A stretch of 62,895 nt of DNA, filler included, from Ministeria vibrans ATCC 50519 (GCA_943704425.1; 6 parts of 6 records of this genome joined end to end with filler, not necessarily neighbours in it), one strand, 5' to 3'; positions 6,315 through 22,032 are shown, numbered from the whole stretch's first letter. Program-made: numbers and translations. The notes: generated from the sequence alone by a model not told the origin.

Positions 6315-7046
6315 TTACATAGTAATTTGGAGCCTTAGGCCAATGCGGTGGTCGATATCGATATCGCTCGAGGAAATGGGAAGTGGCTGTTCGGGTGCTG
6401 GGACTTCAGCGGGCACACGCTGCTGAGCAGTACTAGCATCGACTTGAGCGAGTGCAGGAGCAGCTGATTCGGTTGCACAGGCCTGCACAGCTGGGCGTGG
6501 GCGTGCGCGTGGGGCAGGCGGTGCTGGTGGCACGTCGACGTCGAGAAGACCACCAATAACTCGCGCCAGTGGTAGCTCGTCGTCAGGCACGCGCTCAGCG
6601 ATAATGGTGGCGCCAGTAGTGGCACTGCGCGTTCGCAAGCGAGCAATCTCGGCGACGATGGAGCGGTCTTCGGACTCGGGGAGCGGGAGATCAAGGAAGG
6701 CGTGCTTGAGCGACGACTTCCCAGCGCCGCTCGCGCCAACCAAGATCACCTTGAGGCTTGGGCAGGGAACGGTGCCGTGACGACGCGCGAGTGAGAGGGC
6801 GCGTTCGTAATCCGCAAGTCGGCTGTTGACTCTCAGAACCAAATGCAGAACGGTTTCGGTTTGGACATTGTATGCCGCCAGCGTACGTTCGTCGAGCAAC
6901 ATCTTACCTTCGAAAATGAGACGCTGCTGGGCTGGCGAGATGTCCTCGCTGGCATGGATCTTCTCCTTCACGGCGCCTATCGTGTCTCTCGGCTGAACAT
7001 GGACCGTGATAGTTTTGCCAGCCAAGGTCTTCACGAAAATTTTCAT
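6315..7046 (-). CDS. Ubiquitin-like domain fused to the N-terminal part of a Roc-type P-loop GTPase; apparently 3'-truncated
   Basis: [15 protein letters not shown]...QQRLIFEGK...LHLVLRV (ubiquitin fold, no GG), then [25 protein letters not shown] (Roc-like G1). No G3/G4 or COR before the ORF runs into the AT-rich hairpin. Confidence 0.7.
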
Positions 7047-7344
7047 GTATATATATATATCTATATATTACTTATTTTATTTTAATAGTTATACTTTTTT
7101 AATATTTGGGTGCCAACGGTGCCACTTAAGATATATTACACTCTAACACTGGCGCTCACTGACGCCTCATGACGCCCTAAACCTCCTTTTTTTAACCCTT
7201 TCTCCTCCTAGACTTCCTTCACTCTAATACTCCTGTTTTATTGATGAGGTTGTCCCTTTTTGCGGTTGTTGCTTTCACGCTACATACCTACCAATACTTC
7301 AGTAACCACTTTCACTTTCACTTTTATGTCTTTCGACCGATTTT

Positions 7345-9021
7345 CTATAGTAAGGTTTCCAATACAGTAACGGTAGTGTGGTCCACGGGCTGTGCAGAAG
7401 CTTCATCGTCAGAATGCTCGTCTGAGTCAGAGTAGGCGTCAAAGTTTGGATAACGCTGTTTAGACACTGCTTGGAGTGCTTGGAGGAAATTCTCGAAGAG
7501 AGACCTGCCGAATAATTTCAGCTCAAGATGCGAAGTTCTGATACCCAAATCATTGAGGCGGTGGAAGTCGGAGTCGATTTTTTCAAAGAGCGACTGAAAC
7601 TTTGCTGGAATGTCCACAAAAGCGCATGAGATGTTCAAGCTCTGCGCACGATTACTTATCTGCACCAAATTTCTCAATGAGAAGATGGACTCCTGCCACT
7701 CAGACGAGTGTTCATCGATCATTGAAGACATCTTCTCAATGTAAGGGCTCAGTTTCACCTTCGCTGAAGACAATAAAGAAGTGATACGAGAGTAGCAACT
7801 CATAGACAACCCGTTGCTAATCCGCAGAAGTTCATTACGACTAGCTTCGCAAGAACTGAGTGTCTCGAGTAAGCTACTGTGCATGCTGAGGAGGTGGTCC
7901 TTGTCCTGCGTTTCTTGAAGCAGGTTTTGACTCTGCTCACGAAATTCCGCAAACTTGAATAGTTGGTTCGTACATTGCATGTCAAGGAAAAACTTTTCCC
8001 CGACTATCGTGTCCAGTTCCTTAAGTAATTCCTCCATCGCCTGCGCATACTTCTGATGAGTCATCTCGAAATCGTTCATCCAAGTCCTCATAGAATGAAA
8101 CACGAACAGTCCCTTCAGATTCAATCCAAACGCATCGAGATTGTCGGAGTCATGGCGTGAATAAAGGGTCATCAGAGTGGATTCCAGTGCTACTGGATAC
8201 CAATTAGAGGGCTTTATATACGCTCCAAAGGAAACCGACCAATACAGCACTCGTACGAAACATAGCACGAGTAGAATGGCTGCAATAAAAAGCGCCGCCA
8301 AACGAAAAGGCATAATATGATCGACACTGCATAAAGCTTGTACGTAGATAAATGTCGTGCTGTTTAGCGTCGGACTTCCATAGAGGAAATGAGAACGATA
8401 CGTATCGCACTGTTCGTTTTTCAATTCAAATTGGCTTGTGTTAAAGTCAGCACATACCGTGCAGTCGAAACTGGTATTTTTCGTCAAAGGGATACCATAG
8501 ACAAGTAATAGCACTATATATATGATAGAGACCAGACAGAGAATAACCGAAAGAAGAAAAGCAGTATACGAACGGCGGACAGCACCAGCAGACATGTTTG
8601 CAATCGGGTTCGAGAGAACAGACTCCAAATCGCTCAACTTCTTCTCCTTGATATACTTCTCAGTTAAGGCGACGATATTACGCACGTTCTCGAAATGGGG
8701 TGCAAGGGTAATGAAGAAAAGAAGAGCCACAAGAAGCGAAATGGCAATGAACACGGCTGCATTCAAAGCCTCAAAATTGCTGCGATTCTCACCGAATTCG
8801 GTTGCGACATTGCACCGGGTGTTCAGCCATCCACTTGTAGAGGAGAGGTTCGTAGATGAGAGAACTGGAACGCATGAGATTTCGGCAGGGAAGAACAGGG
8901 AAAGCGCGTTCAAAATAATCAGAAAACCACTCGTGTACAGAAGCAAACGCAAAAACCACGGCAACGGGATACCCAATAGCGAGTTGAAGTATTGACGGTC
9001 GACAAGACTTTCCATTATCAC
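7345..9021 (-). CDS. Pannexin/LRRC8/innexin-like four-TM large-pore channel with a helical C-terminal domain (no LRRs)
   Basis: 558 aa, intronless. PW before TM1; loop-1 Cys pair EISCVP...WLNTRC; TM2; Y-initiated TM3; loop-2 SFDCTV...ALCSV..PFRLAALF into TM4 ending LYW. This matches the Cys/TM layout of pannexin and LRRC8. Confidence 0.65.
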   Translation of the reverse strand: MIMESLVDRQYFNSLLGIPLPWFLRLLLYTSGFLIILNALSLFFPAEISCVPVLSSTNLSSTSGWLNTRCNVATEFGENRSNFEALNAAVFIAISLLVALLFFITLAPHFENVRNIVALTEKYIKEKKLSDLESVLSNPIANMSAGAVRRSYTAFLLSVILCLVSIIYIVLLLVYGIPLTKNTSFDCTVCADFNTSQFELKNEQCDTYRSHFLYGSPTLNSTTFIYVQALCSVDHIMPFRLAALFIAAILLVLCFVRVLYWSVSFGAYIKPSNWYPVALESTLMTLYSRHDSDNLDAFGLNLKGLFVFHSMRTWMNDFEMTHQKYAQAMEELLKELDTIVGEKFFLDMQCTNQLFKFAEFREQSQNLLQETQDKDHLLSMHSSLLETLSSCEASRNELLRISNGLSMSCYSRITSLLSSAKVKLSPYIEKMSSMIDEHSSEWQESIFSLRNLVQISNRAQSLNISCAFVDIPAKFQSLFEKIDSDFHRLNDLGIRTSHLELKLFGRSLFENFLQALQAVSKQRYPNFDAYSDSDEHSDDEASAQPVDHTTVTVLETLL

Positions 9022-9194
9022 AACGAAGGGAGAAGAGAACGGAACAGCAGTAAATTTTCTCTCATTTCAGAGCGAATATCTTTTTTGTTAAGTTTCATCG
9101 AGATTCTCAAAAAAGTTTTATCAGTTTCCTCGATTTTTAAGTAGTTTTTCATTCATTCGCCTTCAGGCATATACAGATTGTGATACATTCGTCT

Positions 9195-9401
9195 TCAGAC
9201 ATTTCCCATGAAGCCAAATGGGAGCATAGACGCACGCATTGCTGCACGCTGTGTGTTATTGACTGGACAACGACACATCGCACACTCATCGGACTGTTCG
9301 TTCCACTCTCCAGCACATGCCCAATGAAAGAAATGTCCGCAGGTGACGAATTGGATGACAAGACATGTGTCTTCAATGTCTTCATGGCATATTGGACACA
9401 T
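9195..9401 (-). CDS. Small RING-H2 zinc-finger protein (E3 ligase-like)
   Basis: CPIC-x15-CGHFFHWAC-x10-CAMC, canonical C3H2C3 spacing. Confidence 0.8.
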   Translation of the reverse strand: MCPICHEDIEDTCLVIQFVTCGHFFHWACAGEWNEQSDECAMCRCPVNNTQRAAMRASMLPFGFMGNV

Positions 9402-9967
9402 ATCGTCAAAGGGGGGCTACGTCAACCCAGAATGAGTGCATGAAAAAACTAAAGACACCACGTCACCTTTACCACCACACTATGCACACCACGAACATAC
9501 CTGAAACACAAACAGCATGCCCCATTTGCAGACGATAGCGAGTGAAGTTTTTTTTTTCTATCCAGAAGAAACACATCGCACCAAGCAGCCGACATCGGCC
9601 ACAACAAACCCCATACACACACATGTAAATTGGGGCGTACCTTACGTGCTCAGGAAGTCAGTGTTGAATTTCTGGTGTTATGGTGATCGTCGTGCGCTGT
9701 CTGAGGGTTGTGAATTCGTGCGTGAGCTGTTCTTTTTTTGTTTTTTTGTTGAATGAATCTATCGCCCCGCTTGTTTGCGCCTGCAAAATGGTGTGTGGCT
9801 GTGTAGACTACGTGGTGGCTCTTCTGTACCTCCGTTTCTTTTTTGCTCACCATAACTGCTGCGGCTGCGCAATTTGTAAGGCTTCCCTGATTCTCTCCGT
9901 AGGCCCTCCCCCTATCGCCTGGTAGATTATTACATATCAGACTGTCCAATAGACGAGCCGTCCAACT

Positions 9968-12111
9968 ATGTCCTCGTCTACCTTCCTCTACACAGGTACG
10001 AGCCTTTTGTTTTGATGTAGTGAGTGAAATTTGTATGGCATGACTGCTTAAAACGGGCCGTTTCCGTTTCGTTTCCCACAGGCTGCTTCCACCAAGTCGC
10101 CGTCCTCGTGGCTCGTTCGACGTACCAAAACGATAACAAACTCGTCGGTCTTGCTGACCTCCCTGACGTGAAGACATCCATCGTCCGCCTCGCAAACAAG
10201 CTTTGTGAAGCCGGTCAGCTCGTCGTTGTCACTGCAGACTTCCCCCTTGATGACACGTACCCTGACGCTGACCTCCTTAAGAAGTCTCTCCAACAGAAGA
10301 GCCTATTTTGGCGGGACAGCAACCTCACACGTGACGACATTCAGAACGCCATTGACTCTGCCCGTAACCTTGACGCACAAGGCGGCTCTACTCGACATTC
10401 TCCCATCGAGACCGACCAACTCCTCGTCTACATGATGGGCCATGGCGGTAGCGGTAAACTCGTCTTTGGCGATGCCCATTGGCAGAGCGAACTGTTGCAC
10501 AGCGATCTCTTCGGTCTGGACGAGGTCGAGGCGATGCTTTTACCAGGCCACGACGGCGACGGCTGGCACCGAGTTCTTGTTGCCCTTGACTGTTGCCACT
10601 CAGGTGATGCCATCACTCCTGGCACACCCCCCAGTCCCTCCAGAAGCGGCTCCGTCATCGACCTTCCCACTTCTCTCTCTTACGCGAAGTGCTTCCAACT
10701 CCTCACGTCTACAGTTAGACGGGATGCCGCGTGGATCTTCGACGATCGCGCCCTCCTGCAAATCGCCGTGTGTGACGTCATTCTCAACCCCTCCATGTAC
10801 ATCAGCGACTGGGCGACCTGTGGGAGCTTTGAGACGCTCGCGAGCGTCGCTATGTCGAAGCGTGTGAGCCAAAGTCCTCTCGACTCTGGCGTGGTCAACG
10901 TCGGTTGCAAAGTCTCGCGTCTGCCCTGGTGCCCTCTCGACAACTCTGGAGAGTTCATCTTCTTCAACCCTCAAATTCCGTATTTTGAGATGGACGACGG
11001 CAACCGTTTCGCCGTCGTGGTCGGCCGCGGCTCTGGCTCTGCGGGGCTTATTGTCCATCATCTCGGTCTGTCGCCGCTCCTCAACGAGGCTCCCGCACTC
11101 CATGCATGGAAGCATAGAGTCAACGACCGAATCAAGGTGCCCTGCTCTCTGCATATCACGAAAGCATCTCCATCCCGTCAGCTCGTTGTACTTGTCGTTG
11201 AGGCACCCACAGCAAGCGTTGACTATGAGCAAGTGGTGGTCAACATTACCAAGGAGTACTGGCCCAGTTTACTTCTGACGTTCGCACGAATTTCATACTG
11301 CGATGGTGCCGCTGGCAGTGTATTCATACCCTCTGGCTTCGGCGATGATCCGCTCACAAATCAGCGCATGCCCCCATACGTGCGTGATGAGGACCTTGTA
11401 CTGGCCGCACGGAATTGGGATTTGTACCGAGAATTACCCCCCGTCTCCAAGACGCATCTGGAAAAGCTCCAGGTTCGCTTCGCTCCAGTTACCATTCAAC
11501 ACCCTGGTTCATCTGCAACTGAGCGAACCGCATGGCGCATGTTCCAACCTCTCTTGCATTCCGAGCACCCAACCGTGGCGGACATGGACTGCGAATGGTG
11601 TTGCACCACCCCTTTGTGTGTGTTTGTCCCGGACACTCCCGCCGCTGGCAACATCTCAGAGGACACGACTTCCGTCTGGCCCGAATCCGGTATCAAACTT
11701 GTTGCTACCTGTGGCTCACGTGCCCTCGCCCACTTCTTCAGCGGCTCGTTTGCGAGCACGATTCCAACCAAGGCTGTCTGCTTCAGCCTTCACCTCAACA
11801 CGGATCACGTTAATCTCTCTCGGGTCATGGTCGCGCTCAAACAGCTCCATTGGAAAGCATTCCGTGGCATCAGTCCGCACAGATTGCGCTGCATCGGCGC
11901 TCGCAGGGGTTCCGTGATCTTTGACTTTATTGGCTCTTTGGCTTTTCCGTGGCTTTTACGGACACATCTCGCGAGGTCTGGTGGCAATCTGGACGGACTG
12001 GGTATTGTTGACCTTGCGATCGTCGATAGCCCTGAAAAACTTGGTTCGAGAAACATTTGTAAGTTAGTATTCATAGTTTCTTGTCTTACATTCGTCATGC
12101 GACCTGCTTAA
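9968..12111 (+). CDS. Caspase/metacaspase-like (clan CD, C14) protease with a C-terminal extension resembling a degenerate PNP/MTA-nucleosidase fold
   Basis: VAVLV..STY...LADL first strand; catalytic YMMGHGG and ALDCCHSG. Inferred first exon 9968-9995, intron 9996-10081 (phase fits). Possible further intron at ~12059 with last exon 12212-12267. C-terminal LVVLV...YWPSLLL..GSVFIP...VADMDCE pattern. Confidence 0.7.
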
Positions 12112-12568
12112 TCCGTGCGCCGAACCGCTTTCTTTCGCTTCCAAACTTTATGAGCCTCTCTCTTTCTCGTTTCCTTTCATTCGTGTTGATGGGATGGCGT
12201 CAACGGCACAGATAAAAATATTGCCCTTCCTTTTCAATACCCAATCGCGCCTAAATTGAAAACGTAATCGAGACACTCACACTCAGTCCCTGTTGGGTGC
12301 TTCTTGGATTTTAGCATTTGGCGACCAGATCGCCTGGTCTCCTGTACCGCAGTGCGGTGGCGGAACTGCGCTTCAGAGTGAAACATGGGTCGAGAAGTCT
12401 GCCGGTAAGATTAACAACAAGTACAAGTTCTGACCATTAATTCATTTAGACACTCTATTTCTTGGTGATTCAGAGATTGACCTGACTGTTGGAGTTGAGA
12501 GCAAGGCAAATGAGCACCAGAAAGTATTCGACACTCATGTTGGCATCTCAAGCCAGAGCGAAGTACGG

Positions 12569-14115
12569 GTGACAGAATCTGTTCGTAAGAAACCCAGCCG
12601 CACCACCCTCACCAAACTCTCTTCTGATCACATCTATTCTATTCACACGATAGCAACTCGGAGTTTTGTCGACTCATCGATTGCTGCGACGCTTGGAGTT
12701 GCACCTGCATTGGCTGCCTCAGTATCGACTGATGATGCTGATGCGGATACGCCGGCAGCGATTGCCTCAGTGCACACTGATAATGATTTTACGGCCATGG
12801 ATACGGGGCCCGAAGCGGCTCTGCGGTGGAACGCGATGGCGTTCGACGATGTTTTTACGGCCATGGATACGGCGCCCGAAGAGGCACTGCGGTCGAACGT
12901 GGTGGCGCGTGACGATGTTTTTACGGCCATGGATACGGCGCCCGAAGAGGCACTGCGGTCGGACGTGGTGGCGCGCGACGAAGTCCCTGTGAGTTACCTT
13001 AATGAGGACGCTATCTCTCAGATGCTCATTGATGAGCGACTCTTCATGGTACGATCTACTAGTTTCCTCTTATGCGGCGGGTTACCATGTCTTGCCCCGA
13101 GGACGCTTCGAGAAAAACAACGCTTTACCATGTTTCGTGTCTCATTCCCTATTGGCTGTATCTTAGGCGGATTCTCAGTACCTGACCACTGTTCAGGGTA
13201 ACAAACTCCGTCCGTGGATGCGACAGGAACTTTGTGAATGGATGTTGGAGGTAAGACCGTTTTTTTCCTTTTACCCTTTTTTGTTGGTTTTTGTGCTGTC
13301 TTTCTTTAATATCCCATCTCCTTTTTCTGAAGACTGTTGATCTGTACCGGGTGAGTACGGATGTTTATGGGTTGGCAGTGAACCTGCTGGATCAATGTTT
13401 GTCACGATTTCCTTTGGAAATGAGCCATGTCCAACTGTTGGGCGCAACGTGTCTTCAAATTGCGTGCAAGCTCAAGGAGTCTACTGCTCTCAGCGTAAGC
13501 CATACGTGTGCATATGTCACCGTTTTGCTTACTCTTTTTGTTTGGTAGACGGCCGAATTGATTTCGTTCTCAGACAATGCGTTTACGTTTGAGCAAATGC
13601 GCAGCATGGAACACTCTGTGCTTGAGCGTCTGGACTGGCGACTGTCGGCCGTGACGCCGCACGACTGGCTGGAAGTGATGTTGTACCGCAGTCAGTTTTT
13701 CCCCGAGGTGTCGCATGCGCTGCGTCATAAGGCGCGTCACTTTATCGACATGGCACTCACGCGCTATGTGTCGTTGGGGTTCCGTCCGTCGCTCATTGCC
13801 GGTGCGGCGCTGCTCAATGCGGCCGACTATGCGGCGCCTACATTGCCTCTCGCGCTCGTTGGTCGTCTTCCCGCCATCATTGTGCAGCTGCTGCGTCGCC
13901 ATAGCGACCGCCGACTGTTCGAATGCACACGCATGCTCAGACGCATCATTGTCGCCCTCACGCAGCCACAACAGTCAGAGAGAGAAGAGGAAGACAACGA
14001 CAACACTGACAGCCACGCAACACACACTGACAACACCAACAGCAACAGTGAGCAGCCATCCGCCATCATAAATCATCCTTCACCGACGCACCCAAACCAA
14101 TACGTGCGCCCATAA
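12569..14115 (+). CDS. Cyclin D-like G1 cyclin, spliced, 5' end uncertain
   Basis: Spliced cyclin box PWMRQELCEWMLE...AVNLLDQCLS...QLLGATCLQIACKLKE...SDNAFT...ME..VLERLDWRLSAVTPHDWL; introns 13049-13166, 13251-13332, 13495-13548. Confidence 0.85.
12779..12976 (+). repeat. Coding tandem repeat, 3 x 66 bp (22 aa DDVFTAMDTAPEEALRSNVVAR)
   Basis: Direct inspection; copies 2 and 3 nearly identical. Confidence 0.9.
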
Positions 14116-18808: not shown

Positions 18809-19649
18809 CTAACATGTGTCTTCAATGACATCGATTGTCTGCAGGTTAGTGGCAAGTCCCTTTAGGCGGTTCAGGAGAGACAGGCAGATGTGCGCAAGCG
18901 GTTGGTTAAGATTAAGAGATGACTCGATATGCGTCACGCTCGCAAGGCCGTTGATATCAGTCAACACGGCGTTACTGTGTATGGAAATATGACCGCCGAT
19001 GGTCGTGAGGTTGGCAAGGCCATTGAGATCAGTCAACACGTTGTTTGAGGTGACAAGAAGCGGTCCGCCGATGGACGTGACGCTCGAAAGTCCATCAAGA
19101 CTGACGAGTTTGCTGTTGGAACTGAACTGAATCGACCCACCAAAGAAAGTGATTCCGGACAATGCAGCCGTATTGGTAATATAAGTCTCGCGAATGGTGA
19201 GAGACCCTCCAATAAAAGTGACGCCCGCTAAACCATCAAGGTTTGTGATGTTACCGCCTGCGGAAATGGTGACAACGGTCAAAACTTTGATATTTTGAAT
19301 GCCCTTCATAGCATCCACCACTTCTTGACGGCTGGCTGCAAGGCTATTGATCAGGTGACTGCCACTCGCAGCAAAACATTCGCATTTCTCAACGATTTTT
19401 TCGTCCACCGTGTTTTCCGTTGCCAGTTTCGCCCCGTCGGCGTAAACGTCGCCGTGAACCATGAGGGAGCCGTTCACAGACGGTGTCATCACGATGTCGC
19501 CGCCCACATTCATTCTAGGGCGCGGAGATGAGCAAAATAAACACAGCATATTCTTGTCACACTCACATTTCCGTATTCTGGGCGTTCGAACCGATACAGA
19601 GGATGGTCATGAAGACAACGTGGACAAAGGGGCGAGAGAAAACCTTCAT
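18809..19649 (-). CDS. Secreted receptor-L-domain/LRR-like beta-solenoid protein, paralog 1
   Basis: Signal-peptide exon 19649-19567, intron 19566-19515; repeats IGGxLxIxxNxxLxxLxGLxxLTx. Confidence 0.8.
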
Positions 19650-21169: not shown

Positions 21170-22032
21170 TTAGCAGGGGTCTTCACGCACGTCCAAAACG
21201 CCCGGCGATGATACAAATGATTTCAGACGGGTCATTACGCTTGAGCAGATGAAGGCATTAGGATTTCGGTCAATATCCAATAGTGTTCCCCCTGTTATGT
21301 TTTGAATTCCTGAGAGTCCGTTGAGGTCTCCAAGTAGCGGATTGCTGACAATTGATACACCACCGACAGTCGTTAGATTACGAAACCCATTCAAGTCTTG
21401 GAGATTGGCGTTCGACTTCACAACCAGCGTTCCCTCAATTTTTCGGAGACTTGGAAACGACCCATTCAGCGTCAGGAGAGAGTCAACACTGTTAAACTCT
21501 AGTGCGTTTCCCACAGCAGAAAGTCCAGAAAACAAATCCAGAGCATAGAGAAAATTAACTCTTACTGACGTATCGAAGACCTGAAGGGTTCTGCCAACAG
21601 ATGTAATCTTGGTGAACAGTGGAGAATCGATTTGAGTGTTGAGATTGAGACTACCGATGGTTTCAACGGTTGAAAATCGAGAAAAAATTTCTAAGGACGT
21701 TTGAGAGTCGATATGCAAATCTGCAAACACAGCACTGACAGCAGTGCCACCAGAAGGGGCAGAACAGTCACAGTTTTGCGTGATTTTTTCGTCAACGACA
21801 TTTTCCGTGGCCAGTTTTTGCCCACGAACATAGACATCGCCACCAGTCATCACAGAACCATTCGCAGTAGGGGTCATGACGATGTCACCGTCCACATTCA
21901 TACTACAGTAGACCAAGGCGTGAGAAAATCATGCGTGGCGTTTTTTGCTTACATTTCAGCGTTATTGGCATTGGCATGGCCACAGAGAAGGCTCACAAGG
22001 ACCAGAACGAGGAGCACAGCAGTAGCGTTCAT
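21170..22032 (-). CDS. Secreted receptor-L-domain protein, paralog 2
   Basis: Signal exon 22032-21953, intron 21952-21903 at the same position and phase as paralog 1; shared MNV.GDIVMTP..NGS.M..GDVY..G.KLATEN.VDEKI and terminal EDxC. Confidence 0.8.

Follow-up and report, generated by a model that had tools for sequence, protein, structure and literature searches.

Large-pore membrane channels of the pannexin, innexin and LRRC8 families, which are generally treated as animal inventions, are built from subunits with four transmembrane (TM) segments and two outer loops, and in pannexins and innexins the extracellular loops contain two plus two Cys residues. To our knowledge the only proposed protist counterparts are the unnexins of trypanosomatids, the case for which rests on topology and functional assays. 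The Trypanosoma cruzi protein Unx1, the function of which was shown experimentally, is a four-TM proposed large-pore channel without relevant homology to connexins, pannexins or innexins, and unnexins are reported to contain the innexin YYQWV motif but no extracellular Cys (PMC10400985). Pores may also be coupled to proteases: in fungi, ~80% of gasdermin genes occur in a cluster with a protease gene (PMC8851545), while pannexin-1 is opened by caspase (title of PDB entry 6wbi). Here we describe a locus of the heterotrophic protist Ministeria vibrans ATCC 50519 (GCA_943704425.1) in which a gene encoding a four-TM channel-like protein, a small RING-H2 gene and a caspase-like protease gene are immediate neighbours. 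The stretch of DNA analysed, hereafter the window, comprises 62,895 nucleotides, filler included, in which six parts of the genome are joined end to end; the three genes are located on contig C2215 of an assembly of 29.7 Mb in 2860 contigs. Within the limits of the search tools, this genome gave no match to light-harvesting-complex, Zn2Cys6 or elicitin families.

Similar to the gasdermin–protease clusters and caspase-cleaved pannexin-1, the locus places a candidate pore gene beside the gene for a clan CD protease, and the first-pass annotation proposed that it encodes a protease-gated pore for defence or regulated cell death. The evidence leads us away from this proposal. The explanation towards which we lean, at slightly better than even confidence, is that the three genes are independent, expressed neighbours and not a system, and that the 556-amino-acid (aa) four-TM protein is most likely a channel subunit built like those of the pannexin, LRRC8 or innexin families. 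A search of the genome for repeated linkage of channel and caspase-like genes, a test suggested in the first-pass annotation itself, found none at any other channel locus, an outcome that the annotation had named as refuting its proposal. The genome contains four intact channel-like genes and one fragment. There are no caspase-like matches on contigs C1426, C341 and C1288, which carry two of the intact paralogs and the fragment, and the nearest on C2175, which carries the third, is 65 kb away. Indeed neither a caspase-like nor a RING gene adjoins the three other intact paralogs, the fragment or the single foreign homolog, P0001. The paralogs are instead accompanied by a D5-like primase-helicase, HA-domain open reading frames (ORFs), a dynamin-like GTPase, an OHCU decarboxylase and ORFs that belong to no family, and the downstream neighbour of P0001 encodes an unrelated multi-TM protein. 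Pore and protease are thus linked once in four intact channel genes, in contrast with the recurrent linkage of fungal gasdermins, and the locus displays neither a gasdermin fold nor a defined cleavage site. It should be emphasized that the adjacency was selected post hoc in the course of a very large scan, and that, for four intact channel genes in a 29.7-Mb genome that holds ~70 caspase-like loci, the order-of-magnitude chance of one such neighbourhood is ~5%. The adjacency would then simply reflect chance in a compact genome in which caspase-like genes are crowded.

The three ORFs identified in the first-pass annotation are all present and transcribed, as revealed by an ORF scan and by spliced RNA contigs from the public runs X6 and X7, which were compared with the window up to position 12400 and cover all three genes. 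These contigs represent RNA because they contain canonical GT..AG joints and their depth falls in intergenic and intronic stretches. The channel-like and protease genes are divergent, with initiation codons at 9015 and 9968, respectively, and the RING gene lies within the 952-bp gap between them, in agreement with the layout first described. The genome has short introns of the GT..AG type, and short intergenic distances are the rule within the window. The description of the genes as nearly intron-free holds for the channel-like gene, which has no intron, but not for its neighbours, as RNA joints define one intron in the RING gene and at least two in the protease gene. The features of the locus are as follows:

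7345-9015, minus strand: intronless coding sequence of the four-TM channel-like protein, 556 aa plus stop (ORF; RNA contigs 7087-9021 without joints)
8146-9015, minus strand: membrane domain, residues 1-290 (hydropathy, Cys, sequons, AlphaFold2 (AF2) model, ratio of non-synonymous to synonymous substitution rates (dN/dS))
7348-8145, minus strand: predicted cytosolic tail, residues 291-556 (DSSP of the full-length model; coiled-coil matches only; dN/dS)
7381-7434, minus strand: acidic Ser/Asp-rich stretch near the C-terminus, residues 528-545 (translation)
9195-9416, minus strand: last exon of the RING-H2 gene, including the stop codon (zf-RING_2 match; splice joint 9416/9501 in X6 and X7)
9417-9500, minus strand: intron of the RING gene, CT..AC on the plus strand and hence GT..AG on the minus strand (joint in two RNA runs)
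9501-9518, minus strand: end of RING exon 1, with the likely start ATG at 9518-9516 in frame with exon 2; the 5' untranslated region (UTR) continues upstream (translations)
9968-9995, plus strand: exon 1 of the caspase-like gene, 28 nt, ATG plus nine codons, phase 1 (sequence read; joint 9995/10082 in X6 and X7)
9996-10081, plus strand: intron 1 of the caspase-like gene, 86 nt, GT..AG (RNA contigs)
10082-12058, plus strand: exon 2 of the caspase-like gene, encoding the clan CD domain (~10084-11043) and a ~340-aa C-terminal domain without a known family
10441-10446, plus strand: catalytic His-Gly (translation; paralog alignment)
10588-10605, plus strand: Asp-Cys-Cys-His-Ser-Gly, with the catalytic Cys at 10594-10596 (translation; paralog alignment)
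12059-12314, plus strand: second intron of the caspase-like gene, GT..AG, 256 nt long (spliced out in contigs of both X6 and X7; X6 depth 0 across the intron)
12315-12433, plus strand: exon 3 of the caspase-like gene, with the stop codon TGA at 12431-12433 unless spliced again

The mechanical ORF of the channel-like gene (7345-9021, minus strand) begins slightly upstream of the true ATG at 9015 and ends with the stop codon at 7345-7347. In the protease gene the 28-nt first exon was predicted from the sequence and then borne out by the RNA joint, while the mechanical ORF (10024-12111, plus strand, 695 aa) ends in 17 codons that are intronic owing to intron 2. The searches reported here were carried out with single exons, exon 2 for the protease and the last exon for the RING gene, and the protease query (window 10084-12111) carried these 17 intronic codons at its end. 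At its 3' end an in-frame GT..AG candidate at 12405-12473 would carry the protease reading frame into the adjacent cyclin gene. Such a caspase–cyclin fusion is disfavoured, and the short coding sequence ending at 12431-12433 appears the more likely, because the closest full-length paralog, on contig C2596, terminates 5 aa past the homologous region. At the 5' end, a single RNA contig from X7 only (window 9340-9901, plus strand) contains a GT..AG joint that skips 560 nt and connects the RING exon, in antisense, to a position just upstream of the protease ATG; it may mark an alternative exon in the 5' UTR of the protease gene, or have arisen artificially during assembly.

The proposal that the 556-aa protein is a channel subunit derives from its topology and predicted fold. 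Hydropathy identifies four hydrophobic segments (residues 20-52, 79-111, 146-180 and 231-267), each of which is also helical in the AF2 model, confirming the four-TM organization first assigned to the gene. The protein has two putative outer loops, which contain two and four Cys, respectively, and five N-x-S/T sequons; the sequons are confined to the outer loops save for two, of which one falls in the cytosolic loop and the other in the tail. The full-length AF2 model was poor (predicted local distance difference test (pLDDT) 53.6) and fold searches with it were swamped by the helical tail, and hence the membrane domain was refolded alone. The resulting model of residues 1-290 (pLDDT 66, predicted template modelling score 0.54) opens with a short helix at the N-terminus, followed by TM1, a strand, TM2 and TM3 as long helices that reach into the cytosol, a strand-helix-strand element and TM4. 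When this model was compared with the PDB by Foldseek, the top ~44 rows were all LRRC8A/C/D or pannexin-1/2 chains, mostly with probabilities of 0.9-1.0; the best rows were 9f16_E (expectation value (E) 1.5e-3), 6vd7_A (E 1.8e-3) and 8b40_A, which displayed the highest query-based template modelling score (TMq 0.48). A language-model search also reached innexin and pannexin clusters as its nearest (score 0.89, 186/256 shared features, with the best 10/10 in one clan). The agreement between these two approaches gives moderate support to the pannexin/LRRC8-like identity suggested in the first-pass annotation; a third method was non-discriminating and sequence methods were silent. Taken together, these results make it somewhat more probable than not that the protein adopts a pannexin/LRRC8-like fold.

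Similar to pannexins, innexins and LRRC8 proteins, the family is thus predicted to combine four TM segments with a short N-terminal helix, long cytosolic TM2/TM3 extensions, a cytosolic C-terminal domain, one strand in loop 1 and two in loop 2, and four of its five sequences contain two Cys per loop. The domain alignment identifies Cys48 in loop 1 and Cys188 and Cys229 in loop 2 as invariant, whereas in the full-length alignment only Cys48 and Cys229, one per loop, are invariant; a second loop-1 Cys (Cys68) is present in four of the five sequences. Motifs around TM1 and within loop 1 are common to all five. In contrast with the established families, its members display no HMMER-detectable similarity to Pfam or PDB sequences and their host is a non-animal protist, while the tail of ~270 aa, predicted from DSSP of the full-length model to be a run of long helices or a coiled coil that ends in disorder, resembles neither the leucine-rich repeats of LRRC8 nor the short disordered plug of pannexin-1. 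The likeness to unnexin is that of a four-TM protein from a unicellular eukaryote for which a large-pore reading is offered without sequence homology. The present family differs from unnexin, however, in having conserved loop Cys and no YYQWV motif, and no sequence relationship between the two was found, the exhaustive search described below giving a single match, P0001.

The intact paralogs on contigs C1426, C2175 and C341 share 75%, 56% and 37% identity, respectively, with the window protein, and the fragment is located on C1288. Relative to the 75% paralog the membrane domain has a dN/dS of 0.18, indicating purifying selection, while the tail, at ~1.0, is the fast-evolving part of the protein; thus, the family is real but constrained in its membrane part only. 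The acidic stretch, which corresponds to the Asp-rich end of the tail noted in the first-pass annotation, is partly retained in the 75% paralog and weak in the other paralogs. None of the five family members matched Pfam, even at E up to 10, and no similarity was found to the Innexin (PF00876) or Pannexin_like (PF12534) profiles or to solved members of these families. The family profile retrieved from PDB sequences only coiled-coil matches in the tail, a word-indexed search of 5.8 billion proteins returned nothing with either the window protein or the family alignment, a scan of metagenome contigs with the family alignment found no relative, and the BFVD library of viral structures contained no vinnexin-like or other significant match to the fold. 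Exhaustive HMMER screening of 1.84 billion representatives gave one match, P0001 (E 2.6e-9, residues 10-116), a 482-aa protein (L026:147-1595, plus strand) encoded on a 2301-nt contig of Logan SRR23272272. P0001 is the sole relative found outside the genome, and has in common with the family the motifs of TM1 and loop 1 as well as the arrangement of the loop Cys. On this evidence the channel-like family appears to be small and lineage-restricted.

As a side observation, the D5-like primase-helicase ORF (matches to DUF5906, Pox_D5 and D5_N; L023:5039-6439, minus strand, equivalent to G000:C1426:33379-34779) lies directly upstream of the 75% paralog, with HA-domain ORFs on the other side of that gene, and may be left over from a mobile element or a large DNA virus.

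If our preferred explanation is correct, the 556-aa protein would be a subunit of an oligomeric membrane channel in which the two outer loops form a small, disulfide-braced and glycosylated β-sheet cap. Assembly or regulation would be the task of the long cytosolic tail, predicted to be helical or coiled coil. The tail ends in an acidic, Ser-rich stretch that may then represent a kinase/phosphorylation or sorting motif rather than a protease site. The RING protein would act as a generic small E3, and the protease would be one more member of an expanded caspase-like repertoire, with a C-terminal domain in place of the parts typical of nucleotide-binding leucine-rich repeat (NLR) proteins.

The size and composition of that repertoire are central to how the locus is interpreted. 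The window protein contains His-Gly followed by Asp-x-Cys-His-Ser-Gly in the canonical clan CD/C14 order, and an alignment of eight paralogs displays no substitution at Gly121, Asp169, Cys171 or Gly174 and retention of the His in seven, which upholds the earlier view that the dyad is intact. By sequence, the protein is a divergent member of a clan CD, Peptidase_C14-related family. It reaches no Pfam cut-off itself, its best match being Peptidase_C13 at 12.9-14.6 bits. Other members exceed the Peptidase_C14 cut-off, with scores of 39.3 bits for L033 (E 7e-10), 33.9 for L032, 29.1 for L035, 27.4 for an NLR-like protein on C138 and 25.6 for L013, and the family profile A2, built from eight in-genome paralogs, joins these to the window protein. 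A language-model search also led to Peptidase_C14 clusters (score 0.87), which is taken as a lead only. There was no match to the protease in a word search of 5.8 billion proteins, or to the family profile among PDB sequences.

Screening of the genome with the profile gave 78 matches, equivalent to ~70 caspase-like loci in 29.7 Mb. The long members of the family are NLR-like, the caspase-like domain being followed by NB-ARC and TPR, NB-ARC and WD40, or LRR, while ~40 members are small ORFs of 280-300 aa that have a hydrophobic, signal-peptide-like N-terminus, score up to 39 bits against Peptidase_C14 and may be secreted. Examples of the two groups are:

L027:1342-7311, minus strand: NLR-like
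L028:889-6129, plus strand: NLR-like
L029:1739-7267, minus strand: NLR-like
L030:1144-5697, plus strand: NLR-like
L031:834-5237, plus strand: NLR-like
L032:508-1341, minus strand: small ORF
L033:509-1375, minus strand: small ORF
L034:416-1324, plus strand: small ORF
L035:434-1339, minus strand: small ORF
L036:453-1355, minus strand: small ORF

Similar to metacaspases, orthocaspases and the effector domains of NLR-like signal transduction ATPases with numerous domains (STAND), the family thus combines the His-Gly and Asp-x-Cys-His-Ser-Gly motifs with members that pass Peptidase_C14 and with fusions to NB-ARC and TPR, NB-ARC and WD40, or LRR. The window protease (~700 aa), however, belongs to a short subfamily in which a ~340-aa C-terminal domain, common to the genes on C2596, C334, C2854 and C2565, replaces the NTPase and repeats, and it therefore lacks the NB-ARC and repeat sensor part. 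A metacaspase-type Asp two residues before the catalytic Cys goes with specificity for Arg or Lys and not Asp. Its presence throughout the family, by analogy, suggests that the window protease prefers a basic rather than an acidic residue at P1. The expanded caspase-like repertoire is probably related to immunity or cell death.

Several points weigh against the view that the locus consists of independent neighbours around a channel subunit. No sequence method ties the channel-like family to Innexin, Pannexin_like or any channel in the PDB. The adjacency is tight, at 952 bp, and has, on a rough estimate, only the low probability by chance given above; a young, lineage-specific pairing is still conceivable. 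Transcripts of each of the three genes occur in the same RNA samples (X6 and X7), the caspase-like family is, by its domain matches, plainly tied to NLR-type architectures, and both the pore-plus-protease modules (PMC8851545) and caspase-opened pannexin-1 (6wbi) are real precedents.

It could be argued from the first of these points that the genes are indeed independent neighbours but that the four-TM protein is not a large-pore channel, and functions as a scaffold, receptor or adhesion protein of the tetraspanin, MS4A/CD20, sarcospan or claudin type, its likeness to pannexin and LRRC8 simply reflecting the generic similarity of four-helix bundles. A trimer prediction with three copies of the membrane domain would appear to point the same way, as it yielded no interface, but its score of 0.00 was returned with the verdict ‘no answer' and is evidence neither for nor against oligomerization. 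Generic similarity, however, does not readily explain why only LRRC8 and pannexin chains occupy the top of the Foldseek (3Di+AA) ranking, or why these alignments are the longest, extending over 215-235 of the 290 residues and including the loop strands, compared with ~150 residues for other four-TM proteins. That the language-model search, which is independent of Foldseek, also reaches innexins and pannexins, and that the long cytosolic extensions of TM2 and TM3 and the pattern of two Cys per loop suit large-pore families, are likewise contrary to a non-channel role. We thus view this alternative as a possible but distinctly less probable explanation than a channel subunit.

The remaining points bear on the proposal that the caspase-like protease cuts the tail of the channel, which then opens for defence or regulated cell death under the regulation of the RING E3. 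The tight divergent layout, expression in the same runs, the predicted pannexin-like fold, the NLR-like proteins into which the protease family is otherwise wired, and the two precedents are all in keeping with such a module. Co-expression in X6 and X7 is, however, non-discriminating, because contig depth cannot rank genes, and ~70 caspase-like loci make one chance adjacency unremarkable. The lack of linkage at the three intact paralogs, the fragment and P0001 differs markedly from the fungal gasdermins, and a tail with a dN/dS of ~1 is unlike an autoinhibitory plug that contains a defined cleavage site. Furthermore, the Asp-rich tail is not an obvious substrate, because the family retains the metacaspase-type Asp before the catalytic Cys, with the basic P1 preference that this suggests, and the protease does not contain the NB-ARC and repeats that would act as a sensor. 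We therefore consider a protease-gated module very unlikely. The same low probability attaches to its narrower form, a young, lineage-specific death or defence module in which a channel with the pannexin/LRRC8 fold would be the gasdermin-like executioner and would open once its tail had been removed by the NLR-family caspase-like protease encoded next to it. If true, it would extend protease-gated large-pore channels beyond animals for the first time.

The RING-H2 gene, the third component of the locus, is readily classified. Its last-exon ORF (9195-9401, minus strand, 68 aa) matches zf-RING_2 at E 2.3e-10 (41 bits against a cut-off of 27.3) with the C3H2C3 spacing C-x2-C-x15-C-x-H-x2-H-x2-C-x10-C-x2-C, bearing out the original assignment of a small RING-H2 ORF between the divergent genes; the protein, of 68-79 aa depending on the start, is by this match a generic small E3 ligase module. 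A functional pairing of this gene with one neighbour, either the protease gene through a shared bidirectional promoter region or the channel gene downstream on the same strand, for example in the ubiquitin-dependent turnover of the channel or the protease, is likewise very unlikely, as the proximity that favours it (RNA contigs that carry the RING 5' exon overlap those of the protease 5' UTR over 9501-9990, and the RING stop at 9195 lies 180 bp from the channel ATG at 9015 on the same strand) has to be set against the general shortness of intergenic gaps in the window, the single copy of the RING gene in the genome, with no paralog of either neighbour having one, and a fall in RNA coverage at 8991-9171, which indicates that the RING and channel genes produce separate transcripts.

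With respect to the surroundings of the locus, the transposon debris reported to flank it was not found: among the 14 ORFs of at least 150 aa scanned there was no transposase, reverse transcriptase or integrase, and the neighbours are a gene with ubiquitin and P-loop domains and a cyclin gene. The former (window 6315-7046, minus strand) encodes a protein that begins with a ubiquitin domain (E 1.9e-23) and continues as a P-loop stretch, for which the Roc/Ras-type matches are weak; its gene model is uncertain, as an RNA joint seen in X6 only (7024 to 7087) would remove its ATG. The cyclin gene (window 12474-14115, plus strand), which at its 5' end adjoins the caspase-like gene or overlaps with the 3' end of that gene, contains several short introns, matches Cyclin_C and Cyclin_N over 13558-14115, and encodes in its N-terminal region three tandem copies of a ~17-aa unit (about 12780-12960). 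Elsewhere in the window, two ~247-aa ORFs with a Receptor L domain (18809-19549 and 21170-21916, both minus strand; E 1e-6 and 8e-6, respectively) look like a local duplicate pair.

The ~70 caspase-like loci, many of them NLR-like, constitute a large immune-like repertoire for a protist that is neither animal nor fungus. Once the idea of a module falls, the orphan channel-like family is the interesting remainder, and as the gene in the window is small and intronless it is convenient to test. A second protist family with the same predicted subunit fold, and unrelated in sequence, would support the view that this channel architecture is far older than animals, or that it has been reached repeatedly.

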